Source: Prasinococcaceae sp. CCMP 1430
Lineage: Eukaryota; Plantae; Prasinodermophyta
Direction of reading: 5' to 3'
Assembly: GCA_013416795.1 (NCBI GenBank)
Contig: RQSC01000012.1
Location: forward strand, 1-64,000
Length of the DNA: 64,000 nt
Shown in pieces: positions 2,373 through 49,596 of this stretch (its first letter is position 1; each line of letters starts with the position of its first letter). The position numbers and the translations under genes were made by a program. The notes under the pieces are model-generated. The model searched no databases and was not told where the DNA came from. It worked only from the letters and a program-made list of their open reading frames with translations.

Positions 2373-4106
2373 ATGCCGACGAAAGCCGAGGCAGCGGCGA
2401 AGCCGACCATCGAGGTGACCGGCGCGGCTGTCTCATGGGTGCGTCGAGGATTCGCATTCGCACCTGTCGCAGCGTGGCCGCCTCCTGAAACGGCTGTCAA
2501 CGCCCACGGCCTCGCCGATGGGATCGAGGCCAGCTATGCAAGCGGAAGCATCCAGCCAGCGACTTCCGCGCCACATATGACTCGCACACCAGAAGATGCG
2601 AGTACCACAGCCTCGGATGTGGCGGTGGCCCGACCCGTCCCTGCGAACGCGCAGCGGGGCGGCAGCGACGCAGGAAGTCGCCTCAGTTCGAGCGGCGCAT
2701 GGCAGCAGCAGCAGCAGCAGCAGCAGCCGCCCATGCAGGAGCTGGACGCAGCCAACACTGAGACGCAGGTCGCGCTACTCGTCCAGCTCAACGATCGCGT
2801 GCGCGTGCTTAGCGACCAGCTGCGCGAGCAGGAGAAGTGTTGCGCCGAGGCCGAGCGCCGTGAGGGCGAGGCCAAGAACCAACTCGAGCACGACACGTCT
2901 GCGCTCAATCTGAAGCTAGCCGAAAGGAACCACGCCGTCGCGACCGCGCAAAAGGAGGCGCGCCGTTACGCTGAGGCCTTGGAAAAAGCCAAGGCTGAAT
3001 CCGTCAGGGCGAAAGCGCGTGAGGCCGAGCTGGACGCGACCATTGCAAAGGGCCGGCAGCAGGTTGAAGCACAGAATCAGGCCATTCAGGAGCTGCGCGC
3101 CAAGAGCGACGAGCTGCGCAAATTGCTCACGAAAGAGAAGCAGCTGCGTGAGAAGGATGCGCACGAGAAGGAGGCTCTCAAACTTCACTTTCAGCCATTG
3201 AAAGAACGCAACATAGAGCTCGAGTATCGGCTAGACAATCAGCGCGACGCCATGCGAAAGACCGACGCGGAGGTGACGCGGCTTACAGGCGCACTCAAGG
3301 CACAGGCGGACGCGGCGGACGCCCTCAGCCAACGATTGCGCACGGAGGTCTCCGAACGTCAGCGCGTTTCCGAGCAGGCCGCGCGCAAGCATCTACAGCT
3401 GCACGAGCTGTACGAAGGCACCGTCGAACTCGAGGGCAAGCTCGAGCACGCAGAACGTGAACGCGAAGAGGCGCGCACGGCGCTGGTTGCCACCGTTGCA
3501 GAGCTGAATGCTGCGCGCTCTCGACTGGAGTCTATGGAGCGGCATGCTGCCGACGACCGCTTGGCGCTCGCTGCCAAAGCGCGTGCTCTTGCAGAGCGTA
3601 CAGCGGCTTGCGAAGACTCTGACGACCTCGCGCGCGTGCTGGAAGATGAGCTCAGCCACGCGTGCGAAGTGGCGGCCGAAGCGCAGAATGCTCACGCGCA
3701 GGCCGCAGGCGAGCTGACGTCGCTCAAAGAGGCCCTCGGCGAGCTCCTCAGCGTCTACATGGCGCCGGCCGGAGGGCGCGTGCCCTTCCGCGAGAAAGCT
3801 GAGGCCGAGGTGCGCCTAGGGCGGCTGCTGAAGAGCCTGCGCGCACAGGGCGTATCCACGGTAGACGCCATAGCGCTGCGCAGCGCCAAGAGCTACGACC
3901 CCTTGCGCTCGGGCTCCAGGGCCCGCAAGACGGGCTCGGTGACTTCGCTCTCAAGTGCGAGCGCTCCTACTCCCCCCGAAACGCCGAGCCCGCGTGCGAC
4001 CTCGCGCAAATTGCCCGCCATCGGTGCTTCGCGTTTCGCGGAGGGGGAGGAAGGCGACGTGTGCGAGGCCCCGCAGACGCCGCTGCCCAGGGACGCGCGC
4101 CGGTGA
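2373..4106 (+). CDS. Long coiled-coil protein of unknown function with poly-Gln tract
   Basis: Uninterrupted ORF with heptad-rich E/K/A/L composition over about 350 aa and a Q8 tract near 2703. TGTAA at 4125. Start could be 2373 or 2577. Confidence 0.75.
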   Translation: MPTKAEAAAKPTIEVTGAAVSWVRRGFAFAPVAAWPPPETAVNAHGLADGIEASYASGSIQPATSAPHMTRTPEDASTTASDVAVARPVPANAQRGGSDAGSRLSSSGAWQQQQQQQQPPMQELDAANTETQVALLVQLNDRVRVLSDQLREQEKCCAEAERREGEAKNQLEHDTSALNLKLAERNHAVATAQKEARRYAEALEKAKAESVRAKAREAELDATIAKGRQQVEAQNQAIQELRAKSDELRKLLTKEKQLREKDAHEKEALKLHFQPLKERNIELEYRLDNQRDAMRKTDAEVTRLTGALKAQADAADALSQRLRTEVSERQRVSEQAARKHLQLHELYEGTVELEGKLEHAEREREEARTALVATVAELNAARSRLESMERHAADDRLALAAKARALAERTAACEDSDDLARVLEDELSHACEVAAEAQNAHAQAAGELTSLKEALGELLSVYMAPAGGRVPFREKAEAEVRLGRLLKSLRAQGVSTVDAIALRSAKSYDPLRSGSRARKTGSVTSLSSASAPTPPETPSPRATSRKLPAIGASRFAEGEEGDVCEAPQTPLPRDARR

Positions 4107-16360: not shown

Positions 16361-19300
16361 CTACACGCCGAGCACACCTTTGACGTGCCCGACCATTGCC
16401 TGGAGCTTGGTGTGGCCGAGCTCGCTCGCCTTCCACTTCTCGCACGCTTCGAGCGCCTTGGTGACTTTGTCGCACGGCGACCCCGTTTCTGAGGCGAGCT
16501 CGTACGAAGCGCCATCGGCCGCCTTCATGCGACCCTGGCACATCTTCGCTGCGTGATCCTGCCCCATCATCTCGAGCCGCCGCAGCAGCAGCGTCGGATG
16601 CGCCGCCGCACGGGCGCCCTTCGCATCCTTGGCATGCCTGGTATGCTTGCTGGCTGGGAGGCTGAAAGGCTTGAAGCCATTGCCACCATCCACGAACTCG
16701 ACAGCGAGAAGCTCGCACTTCGGGGATGGCGATGGGACTGCGAAGAACACCCACTGCGTGGTCTCGCCCTTGCCGGTCTCACTGGGCTCGCCACAGTGCA
16801 CAACACAACACACTGTGTCGAGCCGGTCGCCTGGTACCACGGCACGGATGTCCCAAAGCGGATCAGGCAGTGACATGCGCACGGCCTGCTCAGACAGCCG
16901 CGGCGGTGCCTCCCAGGGCATCCACGCAGTGCCCTTGGATTGCTGCAGCTGCGGCCGCTTCGCGCGCACATCAGGTACAAGGCCCGTCACCAGCATGCCC
17001 GCGCCCGGACGCATCATCGCGAGTAGGTCCTCATTGGGCCGCCATATGCTGATCTCGAAAATCGGCAGCTGGTCGTCATTCTGATGCCTTGGTACCGGGA
17101 TGACAAGAGCGGTGGCGCGGCACGTCACGTTGCGCTCGAGATTGTCGGAACCGCCGAGGCGCTCCGATATGCCCTCGCATGTCCGCTCCGGGTCGTTGGC
17201 GGCACCGCACTTGTCGTTGTGAGCGACAGCCTGCTCATACGCGTCGTTGATGAGTACCCTGTGCGCCTCACCAGCGAGCTCTTCAGCGCGCGCGGAGCGG
17301 AACGCGTGAGTTCCATCGGTACGCTTTTCCATGAATACCGTGGGCAGCACACGTACGATCACCACCCGCGTTGTGGGAATCGTCCCGCCATTCTGCAACG
17401 TGCCCTTCAGCGGCACGATGAAAGGCTCGCGGTGCTCACCGAGGCGCGCGGGCCATGCGGCAGGACGCACACTGTTGTAGCGCAGCGCAAGCACGCGCTC
17501 TCGTGCGCGGTCCAGCGGGGGCGCTGGTGTACTTGCTGCGGTCCCGATGAGCTCCGCGCAGCACACGTTGAGCTTGGTCCCTTCAGCGATGCGTTCCTGT
17601 CGGACAAGGTCAGCGAGATTTTGGTCCAACTCGGCGAGCACACCGTACCATCCATCGGTCACCTCCACGACTGCGCCGACCGACGACTTGCGCGTATCAT
17701 CCACACCGACGATGCGCGCCACGCATAGCGTCATAGGCGTGGCCGGTGAGAGGTCGTGCTCGCAAACCTTGCGGATGGCGGGGCGGCCCGAGCCAGCAAG
17801 CTCGCGCTCGTAGCGGTAACACAGCTGTTCCTTCACGTTGGCTTCGCTCAACGCCTGTCCCGCCAGCACGTCGCCGAAGGCGCGGTCGTAGCAAGCCAGC
17901 TTCCACACAATCCATCGCCACGCGTTCTGAACCCATTCCTGCGTGAGGAGCTTTTCATCCGCGCCCATCATCACCAGCTGGCCCCGGGCGGTCTCGGCAT
18001 TGAGCCCATACGGAGACTTCCCGAACTCAAAGTCTGCCGCTGTCATCGAATTCATCGCCGCGACGTGAGGCGGAACGGGTGCGGCGGGGCGACCGCGGGC
18101 AAAGGGAGGCTGGGCGTAGAAGGCACCCCAGAGGGGGCTGCGATCACGCCCGTTCTCATACATGTCGTGCAACGGCTGGCGCGGCGGCCTGGCCGCCGCG
18201 GGTGCCGACTTCGGCGTCATGAGACGCGAGGCCTTCTTCGGGTTGGTCGTCGCGGGCGTTTTGAAGCCCGCGCGGCGCTTGCCTCCGGCGAGCCCTGGCG
18301 TGTTGAACTTCACCGCCGAGCGAGGGAGCTGCCGTGACGTCTTTGCCGCCATAGGGGTGACTCCCCGCGGGATCGCGTTGTGTGGGCCGAGCGGCCGAGG
18401 CCGGTCCTGTGGCGGGGCGGAGAATGGCACCGCGCGAGGCACCCTCGAGGCTGCTCGAGGAGCTGCGGCAGGCGTAGCGTGTTCTGGGGCAGCCTTGCCG
18501 TCGTCTGCGTCCTCGCCAAGCATGGCGCGCGCGCGCGCCATCGCGGCCGCCGACACTTGCACGGGACGGTTGTTGCCAGTCACAAAGCCCCCCGTGGCAG
18601 CAGGCGGCAGAGCAGGCGCAGCCTTGCCGTCGTCTGCGTCCTCGCCAAGCATGGCGCGCGCGCGCGCCATCGCGGCCGCCGACACTTGCACGGGACGGTT
18701 GTTGCCAGTCACGAAGCCCCCCGTGGCAGCAGGCGGTGGCGGTATCCCTGAGCCGCCCGCACATCGCTCTTGTGCCTGATCCAGGGGCGCGTCGTCCCCC
18801 AAGAGCGGCATGTCGTCACCAAAGACGCGGCGCGCGCGCGCCATTGCGTCAGCAGAAATCTCGACTGGCCTGTTGTTCCCGGTGATGAAGCCAAGAGGGC
18901 CAGAAACACTTGGCCTCCCTTCCGGCGGCCGGACCTGGGCACCAGAGGCCGGTGCATCGTCACCAATCAGAGCTTTGGCTCGAGCCATGGCGCCCGCAGA
19001 AATCTGCACGGGCCGATTGTTCCCTGTCATAAATCCAACGGTGGCAGGTTGCGCCGCTGGTGTGGGTAGAGGCGCAAGCGGGTGCGGTGGCGAGCGTGAC
19101 TGCTTTTGGCGCTGTTCTTGATCCGGCGGCGCGTCCCCATCCAACATATCACGCGCTTGTGCCACTGCCGCCGATGGCACCTGCACTGGCCTGTTATTTC
19201 CAGTCACGAACACGCCCCCTGTGCTGGGCGGAGGGCCTGTCTGCGCGCGTACTTCACCACCCTGCAGGCACTGCACTGCCTCGGGCGGCGCGTCATCACC

Positions 19301-44962: not shown

Positions 44963-45625
44963 ATGCCGACGCGCCCGCGCGCACGCGCGCGCGTTGCCCT
45001 AGCCGCGTGCGCCGTGGCGGTGGCGGCAGCGGCCGCTGCGCTGGTGCCCGCGGGAGCGCACGCGGAGGGGGCCGCGCAGCGGGAGTGCGATGTGGTTGGG
45101 ATTGGCAGCGGGTTGATGGATGGCGAGCCCGCGCCCAGCAAGCAGCCCGGCGGTGGAGCGCCAATGGTGAACTCGCTCGCAGCGATGCGCACCAAGGCGC
45201 GTGATGAGGGCGAACGCGAGGCGGCGGACATCGCAGCGGCGACGCCCCCGCCGCGGCCTATTTCGCTCGCGGAAGCCGCGAGATCTTTCACGAGCGATGT
45301 GCGTGAGCTAGCCGAGCTCGTCGACGAGTTCCTCGCCGCTGAGGGCGATGGCGCCGATGTGCGCTTTCGTGCGTTGCTCGATCGCCGCTCGAAGAGGGAG
45401 CGCAAGATGCTCAGCGACGTGCTCGACTTCGTGCTGCAGATCGAGTACATGGTCCTGGCGTTCGCGGTCGGAGCGATTCTTCTCGGCGGACGCAGCGGTC
45501 CCAAAAAGGACAAGGGAGACGCATCCGATCCTGCGTCCGGCGGCGCGGAGCCGGAGGCAGGGGGAGAGCCGGTGCCGCTGCAGACACGAGCGGTGCGGAA
45601 CGCGAGCACGGACGTCGCCCGATGA
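44963..45625 (+). CDS. Hypothetical membrane protein (signal/transit peptide plus one TM helix)
   Basis: Hydrophobic VALAACAVAVAAAAAALVPAGAHA and a second hydrophobic stretch VLDFVLQIEYMVLAFAVGAILLGG. Coding-like middle region. Confidence 0.65.
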   Translation: MPTRPRARARVALAACAVAVAAAAAALVPAGAHAEGAAQRECDVVGIGSGLMDGEPAPSKQPGGGAPMVNSLAAMRTKARDEGEREAADIAAATPPPRPISLAEAARSFTSDVRELAELVDEFLAAEGDGADVRFRALLDRRSKRERKMLSDVLDFVLQIEYMVLAFAVGAILLGGRSGPKKDKGDASDPASGGAEPEAGGEPVPLQTRAVRNASTDVAR

Positions 45626-45742
45626 GTGACCTACGACGGCCCGGCGAGCGGGCGGGCGGCATGGCGTATCAGCGGCGCACTTCACTCTGGTGTGGTTACT
45701 CAGGTGCGGCCGATTTGCCCTCAGCGACTGCGCGCTCCCCCC

Positions 45743-45827
45743 GTGCCATGATGACCAAAAACGATCAAGCCAGTTCTGCTACTGAACTTCATTGACGAGC
45801 CAATCGTTTACAGTGACTTCTGAGCAC
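45743..45827 (+). ncRNA. Box C/D snoRNA, U38/snR61-like
   Basis: Terminal stem GTGC/GCAC, C box ATGATGA 45748-54, D' CTGA 45782-85, C'-like TTGACGA 45792-98, D CTGA 45820-23. Guide GCCAGTTCTGCT (45769-80) is antisense to conserved LSU AGCAGAACUGGC. Confidence 0.88.
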
Positions 45828-46069
45828 TCGACGGCGCCTAGCTGCCGGACCGCTGTGCCGTGCAGGAACGCTGCCCGACTGGCCGCCCGCTGACGCGCCT
45901 CGCCCTTACGTGCCCCCTTACAGGCTACCATTGAATGGAACGATCCCCCTTCTGCACGGCTGCCTGACGAATCCCTCCGCGCAAGCGCAAGCTCATCGGG
46001 GCCGTCATCTCTTCGCCGCGAGGTACGCCCAGCAGCAGCAGCGCGGCCGCGGCGCCCTGCGCGCCGCTC

Positions 46070-46164
46070 GCTGGCGATGATGAAGATATTACCCGCGCTC
46101 CTGAATCTTGATGCACAACTGGTACTATTTTTTATGAATTTCTTCACGTTCAACATGAGCCAGC
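46070..46164 (+). ncRNA. Box C/D snoRNA, U36/snR47-like
   Basis: Terminal stem GCTGGC/GCCAGC, C box ATGATGA 46077-83, D' CTGA 46101-04, variant D box ATGA 46155-58. TTACCCGCGCT (46089-99) is antisense to LSU AGCGCGGGUAA. TGAATTTCTTCAC (46135-47) is antisense to LSU GUGAAGAAAUUCA. Confidence 0.85.
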
Positions 46165-46538
46165 AAAGACGACGACGGCCTCGGCCGACGCCGATCGCTG
46201 GTGGCCGCGCCTGTTACTGAGAGAAGCGGCCGGTCGTGCTGACACGATGCCGCACGCGCGTCGCAGGGCAGCCGACCTACCATCGCTTAACCATTGTACC
46301 ACAGCGACGCCTGGAGCACACATGTACAATACTCTTCGACGGCGTCTGAATCTGTAACTACTTGCTTGATATAGGCACGACACAATGAAGAAGCGCGAGC
46401 CGCCGCCTGTGCTTTGGACTGGCGGTGCGCCGGGCCAGGTAGCCTCTTCGAGCGCGCGAGAGAGCGAGCGAGCAGGCGAGCGGAGCAGTCGTGCTTTTTG
46501 GTCTTTTTCTTATTTATTCACAGCGGGCAGCGAGGTGT

Positions 46539-46787
46539 CTACTCGACGTTCGTCGCGCGGGTGTACACGTACTGCGAGCTGTGCTTGCACACCGGGCGGA
46601 TGAGGTCCTTCTCCACGAGCAGGTGGATGGCCTTGCGCGCGAGCGAGCCGTTGATGCGCAGGCGGTCCGAGAGGATCGACGGGGTGATCATCTTGTACTT
46701 GGGCACCTCAGCCATGAGCTTGTCGAACGTGTTCTTGTCGAACAGCACCAGGTTGTTCACCTTCTCCTTGACCTTGCCCTTGGACCA
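46539..46787 (-). CDS. RPS25: 40S ribosomal protein eS25, 3' exon only
   Basis: After an acceptor CACAG: [54 protein letters not shown]...YTRAT. No N-terminal exon found. Confidence 0.92.
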
Positions 46788-47453
46788 CTGTGCTCATGGC
46801 GCACAAGGACGCCTGTGTCAGAAGGCTGTGCAAACACGCGGCGCGACGCCTCCTAGCGCCGCACTACGCCTAGGGCGCGCCTCGCCTCGCCCGACACGCG
46901 CCGGCGGGAGCGCACGCGGGCGGGTGCGCGCAATAGTGGCCACACGCCAGAGGCGGGACAACAGGCCAGGCCTCACGTCCCCACACGCGCATGGGCAATC
47001 GCGCCGTCGTGGCAGCACGCCCGAGGCGGGGCCGCCGGCGCGCTGCGGCGCCCCAGCGCGAGCTACACCCACGCCCAGGCCAGCGCGTGGGCGAAACCCT
47101 TCGGCAGCACCACCCACGAACCGCGGGATGATGCGCAAACCCACGCGCGCGGGGTAGGCCGCGCGCGCGCGCCGCGCGCCATCCGGCCCCGCGCGCGGCG
47201 CTCGCCGCCGCCACCGCCGAGGAGGTCCGCGAGACCGCCATCTCCAACCGCGGCGCGACCCCCACCCTTCGCCTCCGCCGCGCCCTTCCGCCCCGCTGCT
47301 GGCCGCGCCCACCCCGCGCGCGCGCTCTGTGGCCCGCCGGCCCCCCCGTCCCCCTGGATGGATAGAATCCGGATCTCGTTCCGCCGCCCCGCTTTCGCCC
47401 GCCCGCAACTTTCGCGCGCGCGAACCGGCGACCGTCCGCCTCCGGGCCGCCCG

Positions 47454-47464
47454 TTTTAGGGTTC
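47454..47464. promoter_or_regulatory. Telo-box-like element in the RPS25/RPS9 divergent intergenic region
   Basis: TTTTAGGGTTC here and TCAGGGTTT at 47738-46. Telo-boxes (AAACCCTA) are known from plant ribosomal-protein promoters. Confidence 0.4.
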
Positions 47465-48096
47465 GTTCGGCGCTCCGAAGGGTCCATTTCATACGTCACG
47501 ACACACCTCGCCCCCGCGCGGGGCTCGCCGGCGCGCCGCCCGCCGGCGGCTGGTTTTCGCGGCGAGCAATTTCGCGCGCATTTCGCGCCGGCGCTCCGCT
47601 CTCTGAGCCGTCAGAACCCACGCGCTCGCCTTTTCGCGCTCGCGCAGGGGAGATGACGTGCGGCGTTCCCAATGCAATTTGACCTCGCCAAGTTCTGGCG
47701 GCGTCCGCTTCGGTGGGGGTCGGCATCCGCCCGGAAATCAGGGTTTACAAATACGCGGTTTCGACGCACGTCCCCTCCGTAGGACTTCCGAATCGCATGT
47801 GTTACTTCGTCGGTGCGGTAACGCCGCGCGCCCGTCAATGCCGCAATGCGCGTTGCGCCTGTGTTTGGGTTTCCTTTTGACCGCAACTCCGCGCGCGCGC
47901 GCGCGCGCGGCCCCGCCAGCCGCCGCGCGGGCGATCAGCGCGGGAACCACGGGCTGCATTTCGGCGGCGGCTGAGGCGGCCAGCGCCCTGCGGGAAGCAG
48001 GCGGCGAGCCACAGGTTGCGCGCGCGAGCGCTGGCGGGGGCTTTGCTTGCGCGGGCGCGGCGCCACAGCGAGTGCGACGCGCGCCCGCCTGCCACC

Positions 48097-49596
48097 ATGG
48101 TGAAGGTTGCCAACTTCCGCAACCGTACGTAGCGCGCGAAGAGGAGGCGAGTGGCTCGGGGAGGGGGCGGCGGAGGGCGCGCGGCTGTGCGGCAGCGGCG
48201 GCCGCACGGCGGCGGCGGCCCCTCGCCTCCCCCTTTTTTTCCTTCCCTTTTCCTCTTTTTTTTTGATGGCGTTTCGAGCCGCCGCCGCGCGCGCACGAGG
48301 GGGGTGGGGAGCGCGGGGGAGGCGGGCCCCGCCGCGCGCACGAGGGGTTGGCCCTGCCGCGCCGCGGGGTTGAATATTGGGGGCGACAGGCGGTCGTAGC
48401 GATCCCAGCGGGCGTCGTTCGCCGCGCGCTCGCGGCAGGGACGCGCCGCGCGCGCGCGCGCGCGATGGGGAGGCAGCGCTCGTATGCGCGCGTGCTGTTT
48501 TTTTTATTTGCCGCGTGCGCGTCGAGCCCCGAGACCACCAACCCTAGCGGGGTGCACGCGGCCGCCGGCCCCAGCGCGGAGGCGGCCAGGCAGGCAGTGG
48601 TGGTGCACGCATGGGTTCCGCCGCCTCGCAGCGTGAATCGCGCCGCCACAGCCCCGCCACGGCCCCGTGATCGCCTGCGCACCGCAGCTGCGCTGCCGCT
48701 GCTTCGCATCGCCTGGGACGCGTGCTGACTCGGGCCCGCTGTGCGCCCGCAACAACAGATGGCAAGACCTTCAAGAAGCCGCGCCGCCCGTTCGAGAAGG
48801 AGCGCCTCGACCAGGAGATGAAGATCCTCGGCGAGTACGGCCTCCGCGCGAAGCGTGAGCTCTGGCGCGTGCAGTTCGTGCTGTCCAAGCTCCGCAATGC
48901 CGCCCGGTACGTCGAACAGCGCCGCGCCACACACCGCGCGACGCGGCACTGCGCTTGCCTTGATGCGCTGCGCGCGCTCCGGCTCTGCCCGGCCCAGGCA
49001 ACCCACGGCGGCCTCGCCGGAACAGAACGACGAGCGGGTGTGCAGCTGGACGGTCGGGCCGACGAACCGCAGCAGCATCCCCCACCCCCACCACCAGCAA
49101 GCTCGGCGCTAGGCCGCCGCCCGTGCGTCGAGCCCGCGCTGACCCCTACCGCTGCACGCTTGCACCGCACCCAACCACGAATAGTACCCTGCTCACCCTC
49201 CCGGAGAAGGACCCCAAGCGCATCTTCGAGGGCAACGCCATCATGCGCCGCTGCCACCGCTACGGCATCCTCGACGAGGCGCAGGACGATCTTAACTTTG
49301 TGCTGGCCCTGCAGCCGCAGGCCTTCCTGGAGCGCCGCCTGCAGACCCTCGTGTTCAAGCTGGGTCTCGCTAAGTCGGTGCACCACGCGCGCGTGCTTAT
49401 CAAGCAGCGCCACATCCGCGTGGGCAAGCAGATCGTGAACGTGCCGTCGTTCATGGTGCGCGTTGAGTCGCAGAAGCACATCGACTTCGCGCTCACGTCC
49501 TGCTTCGGCGGCGGCCGCCCGGGCCGCAACAAGAGGAAGGCGCTCGCCGCCAAGGCCGCCCGCAAGGCCGGCGAGGGCGACGAGGACGAGGACTAG
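48097..49596 (+). CDS. RPS9: 40S ribosomal protein uS4 (S9)
   Basis: Exons 48097-48124, 48759-48906 and 49185-49596 give [27 protein letters not shown]...[46 protein letters not shown]...GGGRPGR. Confidence 0.98.

Follow-up and report, generated by a model that had tools for sequence, protein, structure and literature searches.

In the 64,000-nucleotide stretch of green-algal DNA that was analysed, which we call the window, the 3'UTR of a small protein-coding gene (the open reading frame at 44963-45625, hereafter ORF220) probably contains two introns, each with a single box C/D snoRNA. This reading, which draws on sequence comparison, places ORF220 and the snoRNAs on a shared transcript on the basis that the two are linked in two species and that the stop codon lies close to the first 5' splice site. 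The initial annotation had described the same region as a dedicated non-coding host gene of the GAS5/SNHG kind. Its two canonical introns, each with one C/D snoRNA about 100 nt before the acceptor, are borne out by coordinates, splice signals, Rfam matches and the orthologous locus of a related species (L055). The dedicated non-coding host is not, since ORF220, which is under selection, ends 78 nt (2 nt in the related species) before the first snoRNA intron. The annotation had itself allowed that coding sequence farther upstream would make this a protein gene, and ORF220 is such a sequence. The features of the locus, by position in the window, are:

44963-45625, + strand, ORF220, 220 codons, putative coding part of the host mRNA
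45626-45703, + strand, spacer from the stop codon to the first 5' splice site, 78 nt, putative first part of the 3'UTR
45704-45923, + strand, intron 1, 220 nt, with GTGCGG 5' site, branch motif CTGAC at 45890-45894 and ACAG acceptor
45743-45827, + strand, sno1, box C/D snoRNA of the U38/snR61/Z1 family, 85 nt, in intron 1
45924-46022, + strand, exon 2, 99 nt, non-coding
46023-46266, + strand, intron 2, 244 nt, with GTACGC 5' site, branch motif CTGAC at 46239-46243 and GCAG acceptor
46070-46164, + strand, sno2, box C/D snoRNA of the U36/U36a family, 95 nt, in intron 2
46267-46357, + strand, exon 3 up to TGTAA at 46353-46357, a likely poly(A) signal
46542-46790, - strand, last exon of RPS25 (PF03297), convergent with the host gene, whose 3' end it limits

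We used the guide elements and Rfam models to assign the two snoRNAs to families, scanning the whole 64 kb with 4227 Rfam families. No match anywhere in the window reached the gathering thresholds; at permissive thresholds, sno2 and sno1 were the two top matches of the whole window, sno2 to RF01302 (U36a; 38.6 bits, E 1.5e-5 on 4 kb and 2.4e-4 on the whole window) and sno1 to RF00476 (snR61/Z1/Z11; 38 bits, E 0.0028 on 4 kb and 0.044 on the whole 64-kb window). Both lie below the gathering score of 45 bits that applies to RF01302 and RF00476, as do the copies in the related species (32.7 and 33 bits, respectively), and it is on the basis of guide identity that we treat sno1 and sno2 as putative divergent orthologues. 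In both Rfam alignments the boxes agree as well as the guide elements. Each snoRNA has box C near its 5' end, box D near its 3' end and a terminal stem.

The boxes of sno1 are C (ATGATGA), D' (CTGA) and D (CTGA), and its terminal stem of 4 bp (GTGC/GCAC) is present in the minimum-energy fold. Its D' guide, GCCAGTTCTGCT, agrees with the consensus guide in the Rfam alignment of RF00476. RiboMeth-seq in Arabidopsis assigned U38 to 25S A1143 (PMC8053127), and sno1 is predicted to be a U38/snR61 orthologue guiding 2'-O-methylation at the 25S equivalent of that nucleotide. Over its 5' half, sno1 has 86% identity with the L055 copy, where shuffled sequence gives 59%; the 3' guide shows no conservation between the two species.

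The boxes of sno2 are C (GATGATGA), D' (CTGA) and C' (TGATGC), with a degenerate, non-canonical box D (ATGA), and its 6-bp terminal stem (GCTGGC/GCCAGC) likewise appears in the minimum-energy fold. Its identity with the L055 copy as a whole is 81% (shuffled, 57%). The D' guide, TTACCCGCGCT, corresponds to 25S Gm2237 and agrees with the consensus guide of RF01302, and the 3' element, GAATTTCTTCACGTT, is predicted to pair beside the A2221 site (both in Arabidopsis numbering). In Arabidopsis, RiboMeth-seq assigned U36 to 25S A2221 and G2237 as a dual guide for sites 16 nt apart (PMC8053127). By this comparison sno2 would be a U36 orthologue whose D' guide is predicted for the 25S equivalent of G2237. 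A search of viral contigs for LSU rDNA with the 25S target sequence gave no match.

The 3' end of the U36-like snoRNA is odd in both species. Box D reads ATGA in the window (46140-46164) and CCGA in L055 (2998-3023), where box C is GTGACGA, and in both the 3' guide is shifted by 3 nt along its 25S target, with CACGTT conserved. In both, box D is 6-8 nt too distant for the A2221 site. The 3' guide of sno2 thus breaks the spacing rule, by which an antisense element of at least 10 nt abuts box D or D' and pairs its fifth nucleotide with the rRNA target; among the metagenomic green-algal U36a copies compared, CTGA directly follows the 3' guide in 24 of 24. Because box D is both degenerate and displaced, the 3' element, which would pair with the same rRNA stretch 16 nt farther upstream, probably acts only as a helper pairing. 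Alternatively, it may address another target nucleotide.

These metagenomic copies came from a pattern scan for U36a, which found 31 loci (L022-L052), probably green-algal and many of them above the Rfam gathering threshold. None of the 31 is syntenic with the window or similar to it beyond the snoRNA, and they were used for family comparison only; both U36 guides are common to 24 metagenomic U36a homologues. Some loci carry 2-5 copies in tandem at intervals of 165-220 nt, others a single copy with a 5S rRNA gene about 1.7 kb away, and in another marine alga (L033) a lone U36a homologue sits inside an intron of an SF3B4-like gene. According to an earlier survey, the snoRNAs of land plants have, with very few exceptions, no identifiable green-algal homologues (PMC5122169), a reported absence that the green-algal U36a loci contradict.

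The splice signals of this genome can be read from the introns of RPS9, RPS25 and cytochrome b5 reductase, which were placed by homology (for RPS9, the intronless relative L020 served as the reference). They consist of a GTRCG 5' site and a CTGAC motif 24-57 nt before a YAG acceptor. The two snoRNA introns carry the same signals, with boundaries CAG/GTGCGG at 45703/45704 and ACAG/G at 45923/45924 for intron 1, GAG/GTACGC at 46022/46023 and GCAG/G at 46266/46267 for intron 2, and CTGAC 24-30 nt upstream of the acceptor in both. Signals of this kind flank a random 90-nt segment, in real or Markov-shuffled sequence, in about 1% of cases. The snoRNAs end 66 and 78 nt before the branch adenosine in the window and 55-72 nt before it in L055, and the distances from sno1 and sno2 to their acceptors (96 and 102 nt) fall, together with those of L055, within 84-102 nt. 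Taken together, sno1 and sno2 appear to be intron-encoded, on the sense strand and upstream of the branch point. We scanned JGI metagenome and metatranscriptome contigs for exact matches to the spliced junction 45703/45924, allowing for a G/T polymorphism, and found none in this collection, from which the species may be absent.

Variation within the species sets the snoRNAs apart from their surroundings. When ENA, Logan and JGI assemblies were queried with ORF220 and the RPS25 exon, 20 contigs (Tara Oceans metagenome, Logan) were returned, with 98.4-99.2% identity to the window and 15 distinct haplotypes among them; all are collinear, unspliced genomic DNA, with no spliced copy among them. Across the 15 haplotypes the two snoRNAs show no substitution in 177 nt (one T-run in sno2 changes in length), compared with 18 variable sites in 287 nt (6.3%) of non-snoRNA intron sequence (Fisher p = 2e-4). 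Overall, 6-9% of intron-flank sites vary, including 9 of 96 nt 3' of sno1 in intron 1 and 7 of 103 nt 3' of sno2 in intron 2. The upstream intergenic region reaches 8.8% and exons 2 and 3 about 2%. The lower SNP density of exons 2 and 3 relative to the intron flanks is marginal (p = 0.04) and is lost once exon 1 is included (p = 0.07).

The same locus is found in a related species on a 4.5-kb contig (L055), which carries an ORF220 homologue (P0121). RPS25 on contig L020, apparently from the same species as L055, is 84% identical to that of the window in protein and 87% in DNA. The gene order of L055 is that of the window, namely cytochrome b5 reductase, the ORF220 homologue, a gap of about 880 nt and a convergent RPS25, and Rfam models find a U38-like and then a U36-like snoRNA in the gap, in the order of the window. 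The features of L055 are:

2498-2500, stop codon TGA of the ORF
2503, first 5' splice site, AG/GTACGT, starting 2 nt after the stop codon
2604-2692, U38-like snoRNA
2761, branch motif CTGAC of intron 1
2789, acceptor of intron 1
2790-2858, exon 2, 69 nt
2859, second 5' splice site, GTGCGC
2928-3023, U36-like snoRNA
3075, branch motif CTGAC of intron 2
3107, acceptor of intron 2
72 nt into exon 3, TGTAA

When the two gaps are compared, the snoRNAs alone are conserved (80-86%, against about 58% for shuffled sequence), whereas exons and intron flanks remain at the shuffled level. We also looked for further relatives through RPS25 homologues (P0004, P0005, P0012, P0050, P0021), and their contigs were too short or non-syntenic.

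Upstream of the introns, the protein encoded by ORF220 is small, with an N-terminus that resembles a signal peptide and a single hydrophobic helix near its C-terminus. Among its polymorphic codons, 11 are synonymous and 5 non-synonymous, where 27% would be expected to be synonymous (p = 5e-4), which shows purifying selection; the contigs behind this test were fetched through RPS25, so that sampling was unbiased towards ORF220. No frameshift or stop interrupts the frame in any of the 20 contigs. An exhaustive HMMER search recovered two homologues, P0121 (53% identity) and P0122 (43%), which share with ORF220 its central region and the hydrophobic helix. Pfam assigns ORF220 to no family, and word-indexed protein searches with ORF220 and with its three-member alignment returned nothing new. 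Its GC3 is 0.78, compared with 0.88-0.99 in neighbouring genes. Because of the purifying selection, the intact frame and the two homologues, we conclude that ORF220 is a real, lineage-restricted protein gene. In contigs L053 (1022-1030) and L054, the stop codon TGA of P0122 (from Tara runs) is directly followed by GTGAGT, which resembles a 5' splice site; the 274 nt available 3' of that stop contain no snoRNA.

Another way to view the locus is as an independent long non-coding host of the UHG/GAS5 type, with its own start in the spacer or the 3' end of ORF220 and with the ORF220 mRNA ending separately, a reading that we consider unlikely. It would account for the layout of one snoRNA per intron and for the non-coding exons 2 and 3, which evolve at a neutral level like SNHG exons, and in the window its exon 1 could be as long as 78 nt. 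In L055, however, the 5' splice site lies 2 nt past the stop codon, and therefore the promoter and start of a separate host gene would have to sit inside the coding sequence, which makes a single transcription unit with snoRNA introns in its 3'UTR the simpler account. The linkage between ORF and snoRNAs, kept in two species, also speaks against an independent host, as does the spacer itself. This has a GC content of 0.69-0.74, 4 SNPs in 78 nt (5%) and no coding periodicity, and 45626-45703 contains no AT-rich, motif-bearing or promoter-like patch, unlike other intergenic regions of the window.

The start that the initial annotation gave to its exon 1 (45661, which is 36 nt past the ORF220 stop codon) was defined by a 17-codon ORF. 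This ORF exists in the window and stops within exon 2, before intron 2 begins, but its ATG (45661-45663) is not conserved. The A is private to the window haplotype and the codon reads GTG in all 14 other haplotypes, so that the short ORF is missing from 14 of 15 and is not a feature of the species, a further point against an independent host. The upstream stop that the annotation had taken as the mark of an NMD-prone layout is present all the same, in both the window and L055, as the stop codon of ORF220 and of its homologue.

We next consider whether exons 2 and 3 might be coding. Exon 2 is open in two of three frames, the frame that follows the TGA stays open to the 5' splice site, and one frame runs from exon 2 to a TAA inside TGTAA, so that alternative splicing or stop-codon read-through could in principle give ORF220 a C-terminal extension. 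Open frames of 30-60 codons are, however, expected by chance at 68% GC, and codon periodicity is absent from exons 2 and 3 in every frame, all positions having a GC of 0.54-0.66 against a GC3 of at least 0.88 in real exons. Exon 2 has two SNPs among the haplotypes. The polymorphisms tell the same way, some altering the stop codon of one frame and others being non-synonymous in the other. Compared with L055, the exons show no likeness at any level, neither exon 2 nor exon 3 being conserved above shuffled sequence (exon 2 has 47% identity, shuffled 48%, and measures 99 nt against 69 nt). A coding reading of exons 2 and 3 was rejected on composition, polymorphism and lack of conservation, and the extension is highly improbable. 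The short exons without coding signal that the initial annotation had recognised are thus real, and since they lack both codon periodicity and conservation between species, exons 2 and 3 are most likely the non-coding tail of a coding mRNA.

That the snoRNAs are instead expressed from their own promoters or as a dicistron, with coincidental GT-AG boundaries and no splicing-dependent processing, is a reading to which we give hardly any weight: most land-plant snoRNAs are non-intronic (PMC5122169) and U36a forms tandem arrays in other green algae, but here GTRCG, CTGAC and an AG acceptor flank both snoRNAs in both species at similar distances (with a chance of about 1% per snoRNA), no upstream element outside the snoRNAs is conserved between the window and L055, and the lone U36a homologue of L033 is itself intronic.

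The putative 3' end of the host mRNA is marked by TGTAA. The motif that the initial annotation had called a signal is indeed present at 46353-46357 and recurs in exon 3 of L055, lying 72-87 nt into that exon in the two species within otherwise unalignable sequence. It is not, however, enriched in the window (18 found, 16.3 expected) and there is none downstream of the neighbouring cytochrome b5 reductase gene, so that TGTAA alone is weak evidence; as a general poly(A) signal it was rejected for want of enrichment. Its recurrence at the matching place in L055 supports a role at the snoRNA locus. GC content drops to 0.50 at 46300-46399, and we infer that the transcript ends between 46357 and about 46500.

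Beyond this end, the neighbouring ribosomal protein genes differ in their introns between the two species. In the window species RPS25 (46791-47700) has one or more introns and RPS9 (48128-49185) has two, whereas in the related species RPS25 and RPS9 are intronless (L020 1-1544; L055 3385-3699), with aligned exon DNA 87-92% identical; such a difference suggests that introns were gained or lost recently. In the window, the first exon of RPS25 was not located. The plant telo-box core AACCCTA occurs five times in the window (35963, 47457, 48540, 52384 and 63734; 0.9 expected), with two of the five copies at the head-to-head RPS25/RPS9 pair and none near ORF220 or the snoRNA introns. The sole sizeable repeat of the window is a 122-nt tandem duplication (18486-18607 and 18615-18736, 98% identity), probably inside a coding region.

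Returning to snoRNA introns in the 3'UTR of ORF220, the steps of their expression can be proposed by analogy with intronic snoRNA biogenesis in animals, fungi and plants. RNA polymerase II would transcribe the ORF220 gene to a poly(A) site just past the TGTAA at 46353, and snoRNP proteins would assemble on the C/D motifs within the pre-mRNA. Splicing would then free two lariats, and debranching and exonucleolytic trimming to the terminal stems would leave RNAs of about 85 and 95 nt, which as mature snoRNPs would guide methylation of 25S rRNA.

The position of the introns also bears on the fate of the spliced mRNA. An exon junction beyond roughly 50 nt past the stop codon is the best predictor of NMD (PMC5238794). 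The distances from the stop codon to the exon junctions in the spliced mRNA are:

window, junction 1 at 78 nt and junction 2 at 177 nt
L055, junction 1 at 2 nt and junction 2 at 71 nt

Because at least one junction lies more than 50 nt past the stop in both species, the spliced ORF220 mRNA is predicted to be an NMD substrate. NMD of the host mRNA would uncouple snoRNA output from mRNA output. A stronger claim is that this is a hybrid host, that is, a lineage-restricted membrane-protein gene whose constitutive 3'UTR is a conserved, NMD-marked module for UHG-like snoRNA delivery, or else a stand-alone non-coding host with an internal promoter; we put it forward tentatively, as a minority possibility. 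Were the hybrid host true, each productive splice that yields a snoRNA would mark the mRNA for NMD, and only an isoform that is alternative, unspliced or proximally polyadenylated could yield protein. We know of no stand-alone non-coding snoRNA host described in the green lineage, although our knowledge of the literature does not stem from a systematic search.

Orthologues of the rRNA methylation guides U38 and U36 are thus now identified, as judged from their guides, in a little-studied marine green alga. Their guide elements and inferred targets (A1143 for U38; the region of G2237 and A2221 for U36) are those of plant U36/U36a and U38/snR61/Z1, and sno2 has the dual-guide design of plant U36, for sites 16 nt apart. 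Compared with 24 green-algal copies, however, the box D of sno2 is degenerate and offset by 6-8 nt, and its 3' guide has moved by 3 nt. The genomic arrangement differs too, since U36 and U38 lie in polycistronic clusters in Arabidopsis and in tandem arrays in other algae, whereas here they are single and intronic.

Land plants mostly have polycistronic snoRNA clusters (PMC5122169), and Chlamydomonas has intronic clusters according to the account of Chen et al. 2008 given in PMC5122169. Chlamydomonas thus resembles the present case in producing green-algal snoRNAs from introns of polymerase II genes, but it places several snoRNAs in an intron, where both species examined here have strictly one. 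[quoted passage not shown]

Hosts with one snoRNA per intron, unconserved exons and a tendency to NMD occur in vertebrates, Drosophila and fungi such as Neurospora (PMC2780460). The vertebrate UHG/GAS5/SNHG hosts and the UHG-like hosts of Neurospora (PMC2780460) share with the locus described here the single snoRNA per intron, short unconserved exons, a stop upstream of the exon junctions and a fixed distance from snoRNA to branch point or acceptor. In the window, as in a host of the UHG/GAS5/SNHG type, each intron has one snoRNA and the exons are poorly conserved relative to the snoRNAs; such a host also has no protein-coding ORF under selection, whereas here the selected ORF220 stands directly upstream, most likely in the same transcript, and the UHG-like part is its 3'UTR. 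Hosts of this type are transcribed from promoters of their own, in vertebrates with a 5'TOP start, and yield a spliced, polyadenylated and NMD-sensitive RNA. For annotation, the comparison carries a caution, in that exons which look like a non-coding block may form the tail of a lineage-specific ORF that has escaped annotation.

The arrangement of an intronic snoRNA in a polymerase II host is ordinary; what is less common is that both introns lie past the stop codon. Coding snoRNA hosts are enriched among NMD targets, and protein-coding hosts are known as NMD substrates in human cells (Lykke-Andersen 2014, cited in PMC5238794); these human NMD substrates resemble the ORF220 mRNA in having a spliced product predicted to be unstable, with a junction more than 50 nt past the stop. 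Since post-stop snoRNA introns are kept in two species, the locus offers a simple natural case, outside animals, in which a possible coupling of snoRNA production to mRNA stability via NMD could be studied. Most described coding hosts, however, have coding exons on either side of their snoRNA introns, and their NMD targets are alternative isoforms, whereas here both introns would be constitutively in the 3'UTR, and the host protein is lineage-restricted and has no link to translation.
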